NCBI GenBank assembly: GCA_904063045.1
Contig: CAJFCJ010000006.1
Location: 5,348,408-5,412,407 of the forward strand
Length of the DNA stretch: 64,000 bases
Direction: 5' to 3'
Source: Dimorphilus gyrociliatus
Lineage: Eukaryota; Animalia; Annelida
This document shows positions 43,205 to 55,200 of this stretch, piece by piece. Below the pieces are notes generated by a model. The model did not search any database. It was not told the DNA's origin and saw nothing but the letters and a program-made list of their open reading frames with translations. The first letter of the stretch is position 1. Each line of letters starts with the position of its first letter. The position numbers were made by a program, and so were the translations under genes.

Positions 43205-46200
43205 ATGGCTAGCCTGGAAAAATTAGTTAAAAGTTTAGATGCTCTAAAGGCTTACCATCCAGATACACTTTCTGAAGAAGTCAAGTAATACATTTTCAAT
43301 ATATTATATTACTAAATTAAAAAAACAAATATTTTATCATTTTATAAAATAGGAAAAAAGATAATGTTGCAATCAGGAAAGAGAAAAAGACAAATTGCAA
43401 TATTGCAGCTGATTGTATTTCTGCAAATGCTTTAAGAAATGTATCAGATTTCAATAATTTCCTGGGTTTAACGATAGAAGTGTTGCTATTTTTGTGTGAT
43501 GATCCGGACCCAGATGTCAGAACAGTAGCTGACGAATGTTTGAATAGAACAATCAAGGTAACCAATGTTTTTCATGTCTATTGTTCTGTGCTAACTTATT
43601 TTAATTAATTCGATTGTTGTTAAAACAGGCGCTGCTGGAAAGCTCTGTTAATCGTATTCATCTGGAACTTTTCAAAGAGATTAAAAAGAATGGGCCCTCT
43701 AGAACCCTACGAGCAGCGCTATGTCGTTTTACAGAGATGGTACATCTCATTAGAATACAAAAACGACGGTAGTAAAAAATATACTCAATACCTCGTTGTT
43801 TAAACGTTTACAACTATTTATATTTTTCATATAGGGCCTACGTTATGAATCTTGTTCAAACTATTGTCAAATTGTGTACTCGGGCTGAAGAGGCTGTTCA
43901 AGAATGCCTTGGGCAGTGCATGCAAAAGCTGTGTCCGGTTTTGCTATCCTATGCTAACGATGCAGAAATTAAGGTTTCGGCTTTCAGATATTTGTAGCCT
44001 TATAATTTCATAGAGTTTTATTTTACATTCTTCCAGGCACTTTTAAAGAGTTTTATGAGTAATTTAAATAGTAAATCAGCCACCAGTAGGAGAACGGCTG
44101 CGTCTTCTCTTGCTCTCATTTGTCAGTATGCTCGAAGACCTTTACTATTTACCGCTTGGCTTCTTGACTCTCTTTTAGGTATTGATACTTAATTCACTTG
44201 AAAATACTTTCCTTTCTGATAGTGAACTGTTATCAATTTCTTTATTACTAATAGATCTGGTGTTACCTATTTCACCTATATTGAGTAATGAACCATCTGA
44301 TTCCCCAATTCTACTGGGCGTTCTATTATCTCTTAAGAATCTACTACCACAGATAAGTGAACAGGAAAGTAGTTACGAGAGCGTAAAGGGAAGTTTCGGT
44401 GTTTTGAAAAAAGAAGAAGTTATATCGATAAAAGTGGAAAAGCTTTTGCAAGTTAGTTTCCTTTTTTGTATTTTTCTTCTTATCTATTGCGCAGTTTACG
44501 ATCTTACATTTTTTATCAATTTTTGTAGGTTTTTGAATTTGGAGTGCATTTATTATCACATTTCGACCATAATGTAATAAATGCATCATTGGATGCACTT
44601 CAAACGCTTTTAAGAAATTGTCCTAAAAAGTTGGCAGACCTTCTACTAACATCCGGAGCAGCTTCTGAAACGCATATATTTTCTGGTGATAAAATTTTTG
44701 AGCAAGCTACTAAAGGAGATACAATTCAAGGTTTGCTATAAACATTACTCTAATGTGCAAAACTGAGACAAATCTATCTACAATTTCCTCGTAGAAACAA
44801 ATTTTAGGTTGTCATCCTTGGCTGATGTCTCAAGCTTAACCGATGAGCCAATTGAAACGCATACTCGACTTGCGGAGACGGGAGATAATTCGACAAGTGA
44901 AGAAAGCGAGCCAGAAGTCTTTCCATCAGATGGACAAGACGAAGCTGGTAATTCAGAGGTTGCGGACCGGAGTATATCGAATTCGAGCTCAGAAGAAAAG
45001 TTATCAGAAAGTCTTCCCAATTTGAGTATCAAAACTCCTGATAATGGTGATATTAACAATTCAACTGAGAAGGAAGATGCATCCTTAATGGATACGAGTA
45101 AAGATTATTCTTCTAAAAATGGAGATATAGGAAATTTATCAGATAAATCGAGTATAGCCCTACTATACTTTGTTAGGTTGTTGTCTTCCAAATTTCTTTT
45201 AACTGGCTATAAGAATGGTTTGATTCCTGACAATGCAGTCAGAGTCAGCGTTAAAGCTCTAGCGTTGTCTTGCTTGTCAGCTGCCTCGTCAATCAGTCCT
45301 AAAATTCTCTTTGATACATTATTTATTGAGAAACTTGAAGATGATCCTCAGATGATTTTGGAGGTTATTTTCTATTCTAGTCACTCAGACCCTCAATTAA
45401 AGGGTAATGTATCGTTGTTGATTGGAAGTCTATTGGAGAATGTTCTCTTTCTGTGCGACGATAACGTAATAGAAGACTATATAGAAAAAACATACGGTCT
45501 CGGACGTCCAACGATAAGAGAACTTTGTAATCATCTGATAAAGATAGTTAAAGATGATTCAGCCGTTGCAGCGAAATTGGCTATAAGCAGTATTCGGAAA
45601 TTTTTGCCAACAATGCTTAATATGCCGTTAATGTGGGAGTCTGTCCAAATTCTTATGTCATTACTACAAGTTGCGGATAATCCATACTGGCTTGTTAAAG
45701 TTGAACTCTTAGAACTAATAGGAGAGTTAAATTTTCGTATCGTTAGCTATATGGAAAAGCGTTTCTCAGATACAGAAGAAAGTAAAAAATTAACTAATAA
45801 GGTATTTCTTGATTCATCGAAAAGGAATAATAAAATGAAAATTGTACACAAATTATTACTTATATTAAATATTTCTTTTTTAGCCATTAAACATTCAAGA
45901 AGTAATTTTGAACAAAATCCTATTGAAACTACTCAATGATTCAGATAATCGAATTCGCACTGCAGCTGCTTCTTCTCTTATGAAGTAATTTTATACTTTA
46001 CTATAGACTTTTTAGATTAATCTGAAAATATCTACATTCTTTAGGTGTTTACCAACTCTTTATTATTCTAATAACCTACTGCAAATGGATGAAGTTGTCA
46101 CGGAAACTAGATATAAAGTAACTAGATATCTGGATCCAATATTTCACGAATGGTCACAGCCCCCAACACCTATTGTTTATGGTTTGGCTTCCCCTTTCTA

Positions 46201-49200
46201 TAATCTTAAAGGATATTTCTCAGGAGATGAAGCAATCGAAGAAAATCTGTCACGTATTATTTCCACTTTATTATATAAACTATCTAGTACTAATTCAAAA
46301 CATTCTAAGGTTTGTAACTAATTATTATTTAATTTACACAAATATAGAGCCAAACATAATAATTCAATTTACAGGCTGGTTGTATATCGGCACTCGTACA
46401 AATTATTCAAGTATATCCCGCTACTGCTTATCCAACCCCATGGGGTTGTGGTGTAAGCAATTCTAGTTTCAAGTAAGTCTTTTCTCTTTATGAAATAAAC
46501 GAATCCTTTTCATCCTCTTATGTTTTGTCTTGTGTCTTTCTAGATCTCAGAATAACTCTGAAGTTGAAAATGATAATACAAGTGGTGGTGGCACTCTTCA
46601 AACTCTTCTTTCTTTTATAACAGCTACATCAATTACATTCGATTTATCGGTTCATCAGGAAATTCTTACTCTAATTGGTGAATTATACTGCGGTAAGTAA
46701 CAATTAAGCTAAACATATCAGTTAATGGATAGAAATATAACGTAATTTCCCATTAGGTGAAACGTATAAATGTTTAAGAAGTGTACCGGAAAACGATAAA
46801 GATAAACAGCAATGGAGCATGTTAAATGATAGACGGCTTTCAACCTTCTCAGAGCAGCTTCTACTGCATATACTCAGGTTTATAGAGGAATTTATAAACA
46901 ACATAAAACAATCTTTAACGCCTTGTTACTTTTTTCAGACTGTTAAACATATTTTATCACGTGATTGAAGAATGTCCGCCGATAGCTCCAAAGACAACCC
47001 TAAGCGCTCCATCTTTATCACCTATCAAGAAAAAAGCAAAAGGGCTTAAAGACGAAGCTTTAGCTGGCGTTATTAAAGACGGAGAGAAGGAAAAAGCGAA
47101 AGGTTTATATGATATATTCTTGCATTCGCTATCTAACTTTACGTTTTTTGCATAATTAAAGAAAAAGAGCTAGAGAAAAGTCCACCAAGTAAAACTGAAA
47201 AGATTGGTTCTTTTCATAATATAATACATTACATGAAACTTTATGATGTTTTAAATGCAACATACAATAGCTATAAGGTAGGCCTTTTAAAAGATAAAAA
47301 AGTTTATTCGGTTTGTTTTTTCTGCTAAGACTTGTTATTGTATTTTTAATTTTATATATAACAGTTGTCAGCTAGTCTCACATCGGAAGATCGATTTATT
47401 ACTTTTATGACATCAACTTTAACCGTTTTAAGTCAATTATTAGAAATTGCATCTCTGAAGGAAGTTGGAAAGTTAACTGAGGAAATTTTGAATTATTTAA
47501 GAGTTGTCAGTAACTTTGATGCGTGCAATAGCATTTACTGCGTTCAACAGGTGAGTTGAATAACATTAAAATAAGTATAGAATTGAGTTCCGTCCATCAT
47601 CTCTGTCCTTTGTGATTTATACTCAGTTTAAGTATGTTTTTGACCTTAATTAGACTGTTTTGAAGTCGTTTGCGTCTTGTAAAGCTAAGATTCAGTGTTC
47701 GTTCACGTCCAGTCATAAAATAATTGAAGAGTTAAAATCTTTTAAGAGAAAGTTTTTGAATTAATCTGTAATCTGGTATGGAACCTAATGTGGTAAGTTT
47801 TGTTGAAAAGTTCTAAATTGGTGAAAAATATTGGTTGAATTGAGCTGTTGAAATTCGACTAGGTTATAAAAGAAGAAAAGGATTTGACGGAAGAACTTTC
47901 ATTAGAAGTAAATAGTTCAACGAACTGCCCAATTATTAGCGTTATTGACAGTCCCTGTTCTGATGTTTTGAACGAATTAACAACTGTATATCGTAGGGAG
48001 GACGAAATCCCATCCAATATGAATGAAATATGTGATGAAGTATTTAAATTTATTGAATCTGATTTAAATAATATAGAAGAAAGCTCAGCAAGAGATAGCG
48101 AATCATCAACCGTAGATGTCGAAACAGTAGATAGCGGGAAAAGTGGACTTGAAGATAATCTTGGATGTGAATTAAGCGGTAGTATAAATAAGCAAATTAA
48201 TAATTGCGAAGCAAAAGTAAAAAGGAGAAGAAAAAAGAAAAAAGCCGTTATCGAAATTACACAAGATCAAATGTGCTTTAACAACGCTAAAGTACCAGAC
48301 GCTGCGTACTCACTACCATTTGACGACATACAATATATTGATTCCTCAGGATTTTCAACATCTATTCTAGCCCAAATGCTGCGAGACGATTCTTTGTCGT
48401 CAACAGCTTGTGACGCAGCTGAATCGTTGATGAACGCTAGCTCGGCACTTTTTGATGGCACAGATAATTTAAATGAAACGACATCTCCACCTATAACTCC
48501 TAAAAAATGTTTGGATGAAAATTCACCAAAAATACAAAGCGTTTCGGAAGGATGGAAGTGGCACGATAGAATGAAAGAGGCTAGAACAAAAAGAGATAGA
48601 ATTCGTAGGTCGAACGTTCTAGATCCGAAAGCTGTAAAGATGATGTCCGATTGGTATAATAAAAATGCGGCTCATCCATATCCATCTAATGAACAAAAGC
48701 TTAAATTTGCGAGTGAAGGGGGAGTTACTTTAAACCAAGTAAAGTCTTGGTTTAATAACAAGAGATGTCGTTGTTCACATACAAGACCAAGGAGAGAAAG
48801 AAAGATAACAAATTAAAACAGAGATTTATTAATTTTTCATACTTTGTCGTGTTCTTTATGTGTATATATTCAGAAAAAAAATTAACTATATTCATTTTGA
48901 ATTTATGAAATAATTGATAGTATTCATTCCATTTTGTGTTCAATAAATTGTAATTTTTTTGTATTTATCAAAAAAGCAAGCATACTTTAATATTTTATAT
49001 CTTTGTTTAGTTATTGAAAGCATTGTTTGGTACAAACTTATCGTCTCAATGGGATTCATCGAATTTCAATTCGGACGTTGCAAACAAAGGAGGCCCTGGA
49101 AAGGCAACTCGCCTTATTGCTCCATCCGGCTTTTACATGGGACTATATCATTCCTGCTTCACCGCCCCTTATACTCAATTTACTCAATCGCTTGCATCCG

Positions 49201-52200
49201 TTACTCTAAGAACAGGGATGCCAAGTGAACATTCGGATTCTTCTAGGTATGTTAATTAGTAACTAATGAATTAATTTCCTTATTTTATGAAATAATTAAT
49301 TATTTAATTTATTCTGATAAACAGTCTTTTATCCTGGTTAAAGAAAAAGTCAGAAAAGAGATTACCATCGACATTGAAATCTGATAGCAAAACATCCGAC
49401 AGAGCATTTGTATCTTCTTACATCAGACTATTTGAAACGTCCGTTATAAAAGCGCTGAAGCTCTATACAACGACATCTTCCTTGCCTTTACAAAAACAGG
49501 TACGTTAATTAATTGAATAAAAGAGTACTTAATATGTAATAATCATTTCACCTTCTGCATTTATGTGATTTTTTGCATTTATATGATAGGTTCTAAATCT
49601 ACTCTCTCAATTAGTTCAATTAAGAGTAAATTATTGCTTGCTTGACTCTGATCAAGTTTTTGTTGGTTTTGTTGTGAAGCAAGTTGAAAATTTTGAAGAG
49701 CAACAGTGCGATGGGATTGAAAATTTCCTTCCACATCTTTTATATTTTCTAGTGCTACTTTCCTACGAAAAATATCATTCAAAGCCTATTATAGCCGTTC
49801 CTAAAATTATTCAATTATGCGATGGAATCATGGCTAGTGCCGATCATAGACATTGTATGATGCTTCAATATCTTATACAATTGTCATTTATTAATCAATT
49901 ACATTCTTTTTAGTGCCACCAGCCCTGCAGCCCGTAGTTAATGATCTGTTTATCTCAAGGTCCTTGAATAAAGCGGACAGTGGAAAAGACTTAGATACTC
50001 AGAGAGAAGTTGTTGTATCAATGCTACTTCGTTTATTGAACAATTACGAAGCTCTCGAATTACTTGGTATAGTATTGCAAGCTAGTCGTAGGGAAACAGA
50101 AGAAAAATGGAAACGATTATCAAGACAAGTTGTCGATGCTATTTTACCTTTACTACAAAATCACCAAGTGCCTATCCGCAATCAAATGCAATTAGACGTT
50201 CTTCACCGTCTATTCGAAGCTGTTGCTCCAGCCGTCCTGAGGCCCACAGATATATTATTAAGATATCTCTTCGCTAAACCAAGTTCATTGGTGCGTTAAG
50301 TTTTATTAGCTTTTTTTATTATAAGCAGGCATTGAAATTGCCACTTGGCAAAAGAGAAAGAAAAATTGAGTTATTTATAAGATAGAATATTTAATTTATA
50401 TTAATTCTTTAAAATTAGAAATCAACGGAATCTTTAGAGTCATGGATGAGTTTGGTATTAATAATACTAAGAGTATTTCTATCGCAAAGCAAGGAAGATA
50501 TGATACTATCACGAATACACGAAATGCAATTAACTATTCCAATATTAAAAACAAATTCGGAAAATCAACAAATTTTTCCAGCAGCAATAACATTTACAAG
50601 GTTAATAATTGTATATAAATCCTATATACATGTAAATAAAAGCTTATTATGAAAATTAATAATCTAATTTCTTAGGAAATATGAATATTAATTGAATAAA
50701 TAATTTTGTTTCTTTTTTTTTTACTATAGATTTATTCTACAAACTTTTGGTATTGTTGTAGAATATTTGAATAAATCTAATAAAGATTTATTAACAAAGG
50801 TTAAACGAACTTTTCTGGAACAACAACTATCCCACCTTTTATTATACACAAGTCATATAATACAATGTGGGCAGTATAAGAGTTTTAGTAAAACTCTTAA
50901 GGAATTAGGAGAAGATAATACCAATAACTTCTATTCAATCAAAGATTTAAATAAGCTATTTTTACAATTGGCAAAAGAGAAACCGATATTATCATTACAA
51001 TGGTTTAATATATTAAATTTAATAGAATGGATGGATTTAACATATTGGAAGAAGTTATTACTAAGCGACGAAATATTGAATAAACGTGTTAATTGCAATT
51101 TAGAAATAATTAGAAGATGTTGTATAGTATTATTTAGCGATAATACTGTAAGTTGTTTTTAAATCATTTACATTTAATATAATCTGTTTACTTAGTATAT
51201 TAAATATTAAACTATTAATCTATTCATCCTTTTTTAATATGGCAGAAATTGGACGTAACTAAGAAGAGTGAGCAAGTAAATTTTATTCTGGACAATAATA
51301 TTACAGATTTAATTGATATGTCTCAAGAACCACCAATACAAGATTTAATAAGGTAATACTCATATCTAATGATACAGCATATACTGTATTTTATTGGTTT
51401 GCCTTTTATGTACAGTTTATATAAAACTTTTACAATACTTTTGTTTTTATTTGTTTCTAATTCTAATTTAATTAAATAGCAAAATACAAGAGAAATCAGA
51501 TCAATCGTTAGTTTTTATACAAACTATAAATGATAAGTGCGAAAGTCTGTGTGAGGTTAGTTTTTCTTGCTTTTAATTTTGTTTTTTTTTTAAATACCGT
51601 CTTTTCTTCTTTTCTCTTTTCATCTATAGGAAGCTGAAAGAGTTTACGATTGTTTGAAGTGCTTAAGGTGTGCTCATCAAGAACAAACCGCTCCTCTTTT
51701 ACGACTTATCATTACGCGTATTCTTCCGCAACGTCATTTAATGGCTGTTGGTCGATTCGCCGATAACGTCGCCTGTCAAAGAACCGAAGTTCTTTTAGCA
51801 GCTATAGCTCAGGGGAAAATTGATCAACCACCCTTAGAAGACATTGAAAAATTGTTAAGTTTTATGGAAGAGCGTGGTCTATTGAAACGATACGCTCGGC
51901 TAGCTACTCTCTTATCAAAGTTAATAATAGGGAATTCAAACAAAGCTAAGCAATATTTAACTGAATCGAAATCGCAGCATCCTTTAAATACTGTGGGAAA
52001 ATTAACTCAAAATTCCATTGTCGATAAAAACTTGGTTATATCAATTGTTCAATACGAGTGTTCGAAAAGAATGCCTAACTTCAGAGATTGCGCCCAAATG
52101 TTATCTTGTTTGGAATACGCCGACATTGTAAACATCCTCATGTCCTCATCCACTCATCAGTCCATAATAGGGGAATGTTTAAAAACGGGGGCGGAACTAT

Positions 52201-55200
52201 CATTAGCCTCCTATGACGAAAATTGTTTGCTTGGTGGGAAAAAAAATTATTCAGGCGATGAAAGTCTCGTTCCTTTGTTCAGGGCTGCCGAACTCTGTTT
52301 AATACGTAAGATTAGTGAGGTGGTCAGCGACCTTCCGGCCCCCCACGAAGTAAGTGATAAAAGTCTTCCGACGACTTTATTATATAAATATTCTCTTTTT
52401 ATTTTATCTTTTACAACATATTTAATTCCTTTGACAAAGAATGTAATTCTTTCCCTTCCCTTTAAATGTAGGTTCTTATGTGGGATGAGGATGAGAAAAT
52501 ATCTCCTCTATCACCAAGGGGTAAACAATACCGTGATAAACTTTTGGAAAAGTTTAGTGATAGTCATTGGTTACAAGGGTGCAGGAGGCTAGCCGGAGCT
52601 CTATTGGAATACTTAAGCGTTATTCCGTCGCTTCCATGGCAAGCTTCCGACGACAATCTACGCGACGCGACAAGATTCTGCGTGCTCGGATTTGAGGTAT
52701 GTGTTTAGATTAGTCAATCCCTAATCCTTGAGTAGGCTTACGCTAAAAACCTATTTCCAAAACGTTAGGCCGATTTGTAGGGATGGGCGTTTGTGGATAA
52801 GATTAAGTCGTTATATGCGCGTTCCGGACTATCGATCGCTATCGATCACAGCTTTAGTTTTCTATTCAATTTATGAAATTATTATAAATTATTTTATCAG
52901 ATAAAAACTTTGAAATCGTTCCTATCGAACTTTGACTGTTTAGTCATCATGACAACAAGTTCGCTTATTTCATCCTTAAACCATAAGCCTACTTCAATAC
53001 GAATTGCGCAGAAATATTTTCCATATAGGCGTATGTTTATAAATTTGTTTATTAACAACGAGTATTTCCCGAAATAAGGAATAATTGCAAATACTTTTAC
53101 AGACGGCTTTTTTTTTATCGTTGCAAAAAAAAAGGAAAAATTTGGTTTTTTTATGTTCATAAAGATGGAATATGTGAAGTGTTATATATATTTGTTTTGT
53201 TTCATCTTTAACACGTAAACTCCTTCAAATAATAGTTATTTAAATTACGTAAATAGTCCTCTCTTTCCTTTTACTCTTCCTCTATCCTGGATTTCTTGAA
53301 TGGAAGGAGGAGGGTAGCGAGAGGTGGGACAGGAGAAGGAAAAGGAAGAATAGGAAAATTTTTCCTCGTTTCTTCCAAATGATAGTTTCACAATTTTACT
53401 ACATTAATGTCTTCTTTTTTTTGGTGTTTTTACCGATTTTTCTTCTTTTTTTGTTTCTTTTTTTCTAGTACTTTTTGGTCATCTTTTTTTTTTACGAACT
53501 TTGCGGTGATTCGCACTTGACGTAGGTCTGATTATGTTGAACACTGCAATGGTGTTTGAGATCGTCTTTACGAGTGAAAGCTTGTGGGCATTCTGTACAT
53601 CTGCAAGAAACAGTATTTTTTTATTTTTTAGTCTATTATCCTTTTTTTTCTCTCTTTTAGGGCGTGGTCTCCACGCATGTACGAATTACTCCTTTTTTAT
53701 ATTTTATGTACTAGTATATAATATATCTGTTAATGTTGTTATATACTTATATAAAAAGATAGGTAAATAATTTTGTTTACCTGTACGGTCTTTCACCCGT
53801 ATGTAATCGAACATGCCGATCTCTATTACCCTTTTGTGTAAGGGATTTTCCACAATAAGAGCAAGGATATCGTTGGTGTAATCTTCTACAATGATCGTCA
53901 AACGCCGCGAATCCACGTATTGGTGTTGAGCAAAATTCGCAGTCATAGAGTCTTTCCTCCTGTTCTGATGAACCATTTAGCACCACTGTATCGTTTTTAG
54001 TGCTTAAATTAATTGGCTCGTCTGAGGATGAGGTACTGTTTGGCGAGTTTGGCGAATAATCCCTTGGTCGTTTTTGTGGGATTTGAAATGTCTTAGTTGT
54101 ATCCGTATGATCCGCTTCGTGTTCTTCTAGCTCGCCAATTGTACGAAATGGAGGTATTTGAGGACAGAGGACACATTGAAAAATAGGTGCTTGTATACTG
54201 GAATGCATTGTAGTAACGTGTTCACCGTAAAATACGGGATCGGCAAATCCGATCTGGCACAGTGTACAAGTCCAAGTTGCTCCAACATTTTTGTGCATAA
54301 CTAAGTGTTTGTGTAGTTTAAGAATGTCTCTTGATTGAAATCCGCAGTAGGAACATGACTGTTGACATAATGACCTTTTTCTAGACCTATGAGATGCCAT
54401 TAGCGAATGTATGGGTGATGGTTGTACGGTTAGTTCTTGTTGCCTAAATATCTCGTGGAATTTTATGACAACATCTTTGCCATCAACATTGACAACAATC
54501 ACTCCATCAAGTTGTCTAGGTGTTCCGAGATGTGATAAAGTAGTACGACATAACTCGATTATTGTCGGCTTTAGCCTGTTTTCCACAGTATACGACGTTT
54601 GCATGATTTCGCCTGTTAGAGAAAAAAAAAGAATAAAGAGAAATGATGAGTCAATTATTTTGGGTGGGGCGGTGGAAAAAGAGTACAAAACACCTATTGT
54701 TCAAACGATTACTATCTTATCGGAGAGCTACGCCGTTCGATTTTGTTTGTCTAACGATATAGGAATCATCCCACAACAAGAAATTAGTAATTGAATAATT
54801 TCTTTGATAAAATGAAAGAGTTTTGTTTAAAAAATGAAATCAGAAAAAAAAAATTTACCTTGAAGAAGTAAATTCTTTAATAGAAAGAAAAATGGTGTTT
54901 TTTTCTTTTTCTATCTATTTATCTATCTATCTATCTTATTCTTTTCTCTTTACTAGTATCTATTTTGTTAAAACTCTCCTTACTAACTTTACACAATTTA
55001 AAGATAGGAAGGAACATAGGTTTATGTTTTTTTTTAATATATATAAAAAGAGAAAAGAAAGAATTATATATCGATTTGGCCAACGAATTAAACCAGTTTG
55101 ATTCATTATACCCATACTCTGACATCAGATGGAAAAGATAGCTTATCTATTTTCTTCATTTTATAATTTGAGATAATAAAATTTCTAAATTTTTTTTATA

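Follow-up and report, generated by a model that had tools for sequence, protein, structure and literature searches.

Does a complete homeobox gene that lies within an intron of huntingtin (HTT), on the same strand and with a splice acceptor in frame with the preceding HTT exon, become part of the huntingtin message, cut it short, or remain a separate gene across which HTT is spliced? This question is raised by a stretch of 64,000 nucleotides (nt) from the annelid Dimorphilus gyrociliatus (contig CAJFCJ010000006.1, positions 5,348,408 to 5,412,407), here called the window, to which all coordinates refer. The window is AT-rich (approximately 32% G+C) and carries HTT, with very short introns, on its + strand. 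A preliminary description of this DNA had proposed that either a chimeric N-HTT-homeodomain isoform exists or HTT must suppress both the nested acceptor and the nested polyadenylation (poly(A)) site, and it took either outcome for a regulated switch. We find that HTT is spliced from 47550 straight to 49011, across the whole nested gene, and that the fusion is a theoretical in-frame possibility which, at the level of assembled contigs, is unused to the extent that RNA assemblies can see. Our preferred interpretation, to which we assign a probability of about 0.7, is an ordinary same-strand host/nested pair in which a small, fast-evolving TALE gene sits in one of the few introns of HTT that are long, in an otherwise compact genome of short introns.

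Evidence on junctions and depth comes from assembled RNA contigs of four runs (X1 to X4) in the region 45500-51000. Run X4 matches the window at 99-100% and has every HTT intron spliced out; thus, it represents RNA of the same species. X2 and X3 are a single sample from a relative, organism A, that is approximately 90% identical to the window. Together with X4 they are the informative runs, X1 being a coral metatranscriptome with a depth of 2-9 that is uninformative over the nested gene. In X4 the HTT junction 47550^49011 is present at a contig depth of 206.7 and the homeobox junction 47792^47863 at 42.9. In X2/X3 the homeobox junction is likewise present, and the HTT junction appears as a 28-letter loose end at 49009, which corresponds to the end of the HTT exon in the relative. 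The joint 47550^47863, which would mark the chimera, is not among the listed joints of the X4 and X2/X3 contigs, and thus absent from the contigs of two species in which both normal junctions are found. Four joints were recorded beyond those given here, of which three are extra X2/X3 joints and the fourth is presumably another variant of organism A.

The depth values lead to the same result. For the bin 47708-47891 of X4, the homeobox contig alone predicts a depth of 26.6 (42.9 x 114/184), and 26.6 is observed; in X2/X3 the corresponding values are 7.06 predicted and 6.98 observed. This agreement leaves no room for a second contig over the start of homeobox exon 2 (47863-47891). Moreover, a second path entering at 47863 at appreciable depth would break the homeobox contig, and the fact that this contig of X4 (1,371 nt; 47521-47791 joined to 47862-48961) runs unbroken across 47863 therefore counts against a fusion.

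It is understandable why a fusion was considered. As the preliminary description stated, the HTT exon 47365-47550 is in phase 0 at the donor, which can be read directly in the sequence, and the homeobox acceptor (47862/47863) is in frame with that donor and lies upstream of the HTT acceptor at 49010, as is evident from the sequence and from open frame 1. Joining 47550 to 47863 gives an open frame of 1,114 amino acids (aa) of HTT plus 317 aa, so that a regulated splice in some stage or cell type would yield an N-HTT/TALE-homeodomain protein of some 1,431 aa. A third species, represented by the 1,816-nt Logan contig L001 that serves as reference for the identity figures below, retains the donor, the acceptor and their phases, and both genes are expressed in the same libraries. 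However, the in-frame match of donor and acceptor is no more than chance would provide (the prior for the phase being 1 in 3), and its conservation is automatic because both genes are conserved in L001. Given also the missing joint in the three informative runs, the depth balance, the unbroken contig and the weakness of the nested acceptor described below, we consider such a fusion highly improbable.

The identity of the host gene is clear. Exon 47365-47550 matches positions 479-534 of the Pfam profile Htt_N-HEAT (PF12372; E 5e-13, above cut-off), and the exon starting at 49011 continues with positions 535-596, again above the cut-off. Since the profile is continuous across the two flanking exons, 47551-49010 constitutes a single HTT intron of 1,460 nt, and the uninterrupted N-terminal HEAT region over both exons identifies the host as huntingtin. 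The downstream exon ends at 49246 and not, as had been stated, at 49247. A reconstruction of the HTT N-terminus starts at 43205 and reaches 47550 after 1,114 aa, close to the earlier estimate of about 1,100; in this model the last eight junctions are confirmed by RNA, and the first seven introns are heuristic and come from a frame-keeping search. The start resembles N17 (43205-43284 examined) and is followed by neither a polyglutamine nor a proline-rich tract. Among the 14 RNA-confirmed introns between 45.8 and 50.4 kb, all measure 59-128 nt except the 1,460-nt intron with the homeobox gene.

The homeobox gene lies wholly in this intron on the same strand, has its own ATG, splice sites and poly(A) signal, and is expressed. 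It consists of two exons and encodes 322 aa. Exon 2 specifies an acidic, serine-rich N-terminal part, a basic run (KRRRKKKK) and a C-terminal homeodomain, so that the acidic linker and TALE homeodomain predicted downstream of 47863 are borne out by the translation. The Homeobox_KN profile is matched over its full length (1-40/40; E 3.2e-11; 43.3 bits versus a cut-off of 24). Assignment to the TALE class follows from the three-residue extension of the loop that joins helices 1 and 2, a stretch aligned to PBX1 without gaps, and from the WF.N.R signature of helix 3. The closest solved structures are the homeodomains of PBX1/Exd and MEIS1/2 (E 6e-10 to 4e-9). A PBC or MEIS N-terminal domain was not found in the 317 aa (Pfam, E up to 1), and the protein thus lacks the mark of the PBC/MEIS subclass. 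A word search of a large protein collection retrieved a single full-length relative, P0001 (305 aa, 89% identical), which is encoded on L001; the collection does not contain the spliced protein of the same species. The missing PBC/MEIS domain, an asparagine at residue 50, two cysteines after helix 3 and the single full-length relative together argue for a divergent, lineage-restricted TALE protein. Look-alikes in the ESM Atlas were uninformative (top score 0.84). A metagenome scan with the homeobox protein returned three loci only; they share 42% identity with it across 33 residues of the homeodomain and, as unrelated TALE genes, were left out of the analysis.

At the 3' end of the nested gene, the AATAAA at 48942 reported earlier is present and is the only AATAAA or ATTAAA between the homeobox stop codon and the HTT acceptor. 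The X4 contig stops at 48961, 14 nt past this signal, and the site thus appears to be in use by the homeobox transcript.

L001 is colinear with window positions 47377-48826, introns included, at 80% identity, which means that the third species keeps the HTT exon, the leader, homeobox exon 1, the 70-nt intron and exon 2 in this order. Identity by codon position is 91/95/55% for the homeobox open reading frame (ORF) and 87/95/53% for the HTT exon, a pattern that reveals purifying selection on both proteins and over the entire homeobox ORF. The neutral identity level to L001 is approximately 55% or lower, identity being 42-48% in the ordinary HTT intron 47276-47362 and in the homeobox 3' untranslated region (3'UTR).

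Against this level the non-coding DNA at the 5' end of the nested gene stands out. Over the first 150 nt past the HTT donor (47551-47700), identity to L001 reaches 84.7% (127/150), compared with 53-55% at third codon positions; for the 70-nt intron of the homeobox gene it is 85.7% (60/70). Both stretches were compared with L001:378-700. The contig of organism A over 47521-47791 is 94% identical to the window (15 changes and 2 gaps in 271 nt) versus 88-91% in coding exons. These comparisons indicate strong constraint on both the block and the intron. The interval 47551-47862 contains four GTTGAA and seven TTGAA motifs, where 312 nt of the window hold on average 0.15 and 0.84, respectively (approximately 8- to 25-fold enrichment; top 0.1% of windows), and three GTTGAA plus one GGTGAA within the 70-nt intron are conserved in L001. 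Judged from sequence conservation, the block probably serves the homeobox gene as promoter and/or 5' leader, and the GTTGAA-type motifs in the intron may be binding sites for a regulator of splicing or transcription. A scan of 47200-49100 against Rfam (E up to 1) gave no match, so the conserved blocks do not belong to a known snoRNA, miRNA or other RNA family, and the single-strand fold of 47521-47900 is no better than shuffled sequences (z -0.81), with no sign of a structured RNA. Neither the 70-nt intron nor the leader is coding, as all relevant frames contain stops and L001 has a frame-shifting 2-nt indel. A PBX/HOX-like site, TGATTTAT, at 47613 beside CTGTCC was considered as an autoregulatory site and discarded, its AT being changed in L001 and a single occurrence not being significant.

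Taking into account these data, we propose that the homeobox gene would be transcribed mainly from its own promoter, located in or just upstream of the conserved block. Because introns of this region measure 59-128 nt with a single exception, pairing of splice sites across short introns should dominate, and the nested acceptor at 47863 would normally be paired, by intron definition, only with its own donor 70 nt upstream. The strength of the splice sites is consistent with this proposal: by a crude pyrimidine count over the 14 RNA-confirmed introns, the nested acceptor is the poorest in pyrimidines (fraction 0.50; T 0.33) and that of HTT at 49010 is among the richest (0.78; T 0.72). Polyadenylation is coupled to recognition of the last 3' splice site. 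As HTT leaves the acceptor at 47863 unused, neither the terminal exon of the nested gene nor the poly(A) site of that exon would be well defined on HTT pre-mRNA. It is in this sense that HTT must suppress the nested acceptor and poly(A) site; any nested gene on the strand of its host imposes this requirement, which alone does not amount to a regulated switch, and the latter reading is unproven.

The assembly graphs contain a further element that has to be accounted for. In both species homeobox contigs (record 16 of X4; records 8/12 of the relative) begin exactly at 47521, that is 30 nt (k-1 for words of 31 letters) before the first intron base, and the spliced HTT contig opens with the same 30 letters. 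The common start implies that the graphs of both species fork at the HTT donor, one branch being spliced to 49011 and the other continuing unspliced through 47551-47791 into the homeobox transcript. Hence, some RNA crosses the HTT donor unspliced. The unspliced branch may consist of HTT pre-mRNA reads bridging to an internal start, reflect an upstream start site, or derive from a truncating isoform, and the contigs cannot tell which.

If the last of these applied, RNA from the HTT promoter would ignore the donor at 47550, keep 47551-47792, splice the nested intron and end at the poly(A) site near 48961, with the conserved leader and intron setting the ratio. The HTT frame would then end with CVQQ-VS (TGA at 47557-47559), yielding a fragment of about 1,116 aa. 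Such truncation of HTT agrees with the contig 47521-47791 joined to 47862-48961 and tied to the HTT exon at the fork in two species, with the lack of contig depth in the other HTT introns of X4, with the strong conservation of leader and small intron, and with the precedents of H13/Mcts2 (PMC13309782) and HTT1a. The same contig, however, would result if a small number of reads from unspliced pre-mRNA connected to an internal start, and longer introns are more often retained in genomes of this kind (PMC7854359). Moreover, HTT depth does not drop across the intron (127 to 207-263 in X4, 27.3 to 27.4 in X2, as crude contig means). The stop codon would lie approximately 235 nt before the exon junction and 1.3 kb before the poly(A) site. 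By the rules of nonsense-mediated decay an mRNA with such an early stop should be unstable, and this predicted instability leads us to rank the truncating explanation low. What stands of the truncation suggested previously is the unspliced branch at the donor fork in two species, and we regard a truncated host transcript as unlikely. A more specific version holds that the conserved 150 nt after the donor and the 70-nt intron with its GTTGAA cluster are cis elements of a regulated skipping of the HTT donor that ends at the nested poly(A) site. Although we think this rather improbable, it would, if true, produce an mRNA for the roughly 1,116-aa fragment from the N-terminus of HTT, tie huntingtin output to a TALE factor, and make the read-through an ancient natural counterpart of incomplete HTT splicing.

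Alternatively, the homeobox transcript might start inside or upstream of the HTT exon, for instance in the 87-nt intron 47278-47364, in which case the end of the HTT exon would at the same time be homeobox 5'UTR, and the conserved block would act as a regulatory leader with an upstream open reading frame (uORF) rather than as a promoter. The contigs of both species do begin at the fork within the HTT exon, a conserved 9-codon uORF (47634-47663) coincides with the conservation peak of 93%, and UTRs of D. gyrociliatus are reported to be rather long (PMC7854359). Yet contigs cannot show a start, nucleotide conservation spans the whole block and not the uORF alone, and the block yielded neither a fold signal nor an Rfam family. 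We therefore consider an upstream start, too, to be quite unlikely.

Several points weigh against an ordinary host/nested pair. Contigs drop rare variants and report presence only, without true starts and ends or local depth, and a rare or stage-specific HTT-homeobox fusion may escape them. They also show no transcription start for the homeobox gene, whose own promoter we infer, and the ranking of the acceptors comes from 14 introns and a crude pyrimidine count. Finally, X4 contig depth is zero in the neighbouring short HTT introns and in 48962-49010, which argues against the read-through at 47550 being simply an even background of pre-mRNA. The zero depth could be explained by graph clean-up, if the short introns were removed as bubbles and 48962-49010 was cut as a weak connection. 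No contig of either species reaches upstream of 47521 from the nested transcript. Traits reported for the D. gyrociliatus genome bear on this issue: the median intron measures 66 bp, longer introns are more often retained, neither operons nor trans-splicing occur, and 944 ATAC (assay for transposase-accessible chromatin) peaks fall into unusually large introns (PMC7854359). The intron sizes found here fit this report, and the traits favour an own promoter within the long intron plus some unspliced carry-over at the donor.

Coordinates of the features discussed are compiled in Table 1.

Table 1. Features of the huntingtin intron and its flanks in the window (identities refer to L001; joints are from RNA contigs).
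Feature	Position	Strand	Characteristics
HTT coding exon	47365..47550	+	Phase 0 at both ends; stop-free translation ending NSIYCVQQ, followed by gtgagt; joints 47277^47365 and 47550^49011
Fork in RNA assembly graph	47521..47551	+	Last 30 nt of HTT exon, then spliced to 49011 or unspliced into the intron
Conserved non-coding block	47551..47700	+	Directly after the HTT donor; 84.7% identical (127/150)
uORF, 9 codons	47634..47663	+	MFLTLIRLF*; MFLTLISLF* in L001; at the conservation peak (93%)
Stretch upstream of homeobox ATG	47701..47777	+	63% identical; in-frame TAA 9 nt before the ATG
Homeobox exon 1, coding part	47778..47792	+	MEPNV; ATG at 47778; donor gtaagt; 15/15 identical; joint 47792^47863 in three runs
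Homeobox intron, 70 nt	47793..47862	+	RNA joint; pyrimidine-poor acceptor gactag; 85.7% identical
Homeobox exon 2, coding sequence	47863..48816	+	317 aa plus stop; open in frame 1 (VIKEEK...ITN*); Pfam match; selection on whole ORF
TALE-class homeodomain, 63 aa	48592..48780	+	WFNNKR in helix 3; Homeobox_KN 1-40/40
Homeobox 3'UTR	48817..48961	+	AATAAA at 48942-48947; end of X4 RNA contig at 48961
Next HTT exon	49011..49246	+	LLKALFGTN...; Pfam Htt_N-HEAT 535-596, above cut-off; joints 47550^49011 and 49246^49325

Three observations stand apart from the argument above. In X2/X3 the homeobox contig breaks at about 48067-48091, where depth rises from 11.4 to 38.9, and X4 has no such break; the jump implies an unseen branch of approximately 27x that joins the transcript inside exon 2 and may reflect either a divergent haplotype or the use of another 5' end. 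An X1 contig crosses a 59-nt HTT intron unspliced (47098-47277), and X1 thus holds low-depth DNA or pre-mRNA of this animal, which is probably a member of the aquarium or reef fauna and not the coral. Another large HTT intron contains a C2H2 zinc-finger ORF on the - strand (53777-54688), antisense to HTT.

Our analysis adds one more same-strand host/nested pair from a compact invertebrate genome, in which a tempting in-frame fusion is not made at a detectable level; the absence of a detectable chimera spares follow-up work on a fusion protein. The locus also offers a clean natural case of a short-intron, intron-definition spliceosome skipping a complete same-strand gene together with its competing acceptor and poly(A) site. 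The main source of interest is the constraint above neutral in the 5' non-coding DNA and the tiny intron, which marks candidate regulatory elements.

With respect to its protein product, the nested gene resembles PBX/Exd and MEIS/PKNOX in its 63-residue homeodomain with a three-residue loop extension, the WF-N-R motif of helix 3 and PYPS after helix 1. It differs from them in the lack of a PBC or MEIS domain (Pfam, E up to 1), in the asparagine at residue 50 and in the two cysteines after helix 3. An expansion of spiralian-specific TALE genes of the SPILE type is documented (PMC8524836, PMC6118893), and the present homeodomain might be a candidate member.

Pairs of host and nested genes and the interference between them are well described (for a survey, see PMC11694760). 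At the H13/Mcts2 locus nested transcription drives intronic polyadenylation of the host (PMC13309782). Common to that locus and the present one are a complete protein-coding gene in a host intron, a host that must be transcribed and spliced over the nested gene, and nested activity that can in principle cause premature polyadenylation of the host. Host truncation is demonstrated for H13/Mcts2 only, where it occurs upstream of the nested promoter and under the control of imprinting and DNA methylation. By contrast, the nested gene studied here is spliced, has an in-frame acceptor and resides in a compact-genome invertebrate, and no truncated host transcript is demonstrated for it.

A second parallel is HTT1a, for which intron 1 of mammalian HTT is incompletely spliced and a cryptic poly(A) site within it is used. 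The annelid locus would resemble it if an HTT donor stayed unspliced, translation stopped within the first codons of the intron and a poly(A) site in that intron were used, which together would lead to an N-terminal HTT fragment. HTT1a, however, concerns intron 1, requires an expansion of the CAG repeat and employs cryptic sites. In the annelid, the intron lies far downstream, after residue 1,114; the poly(A) site is that of a genuine nested gene, polyglutamine is absent, and the isoform is no more than a possibility. The present data do not show truncation, which, if it took place, would parallel the incomplete splicing of HTT in a natural setting. In a brief search of the literature, we came across no description of a gene nested within an HTT intron of an invertebrate. 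Thus, the arrangement is of a known kind, the same-strand host/nested pair, and it is the conserved non-coding elements at the 5' end of the nested gene that constitute the new observation.

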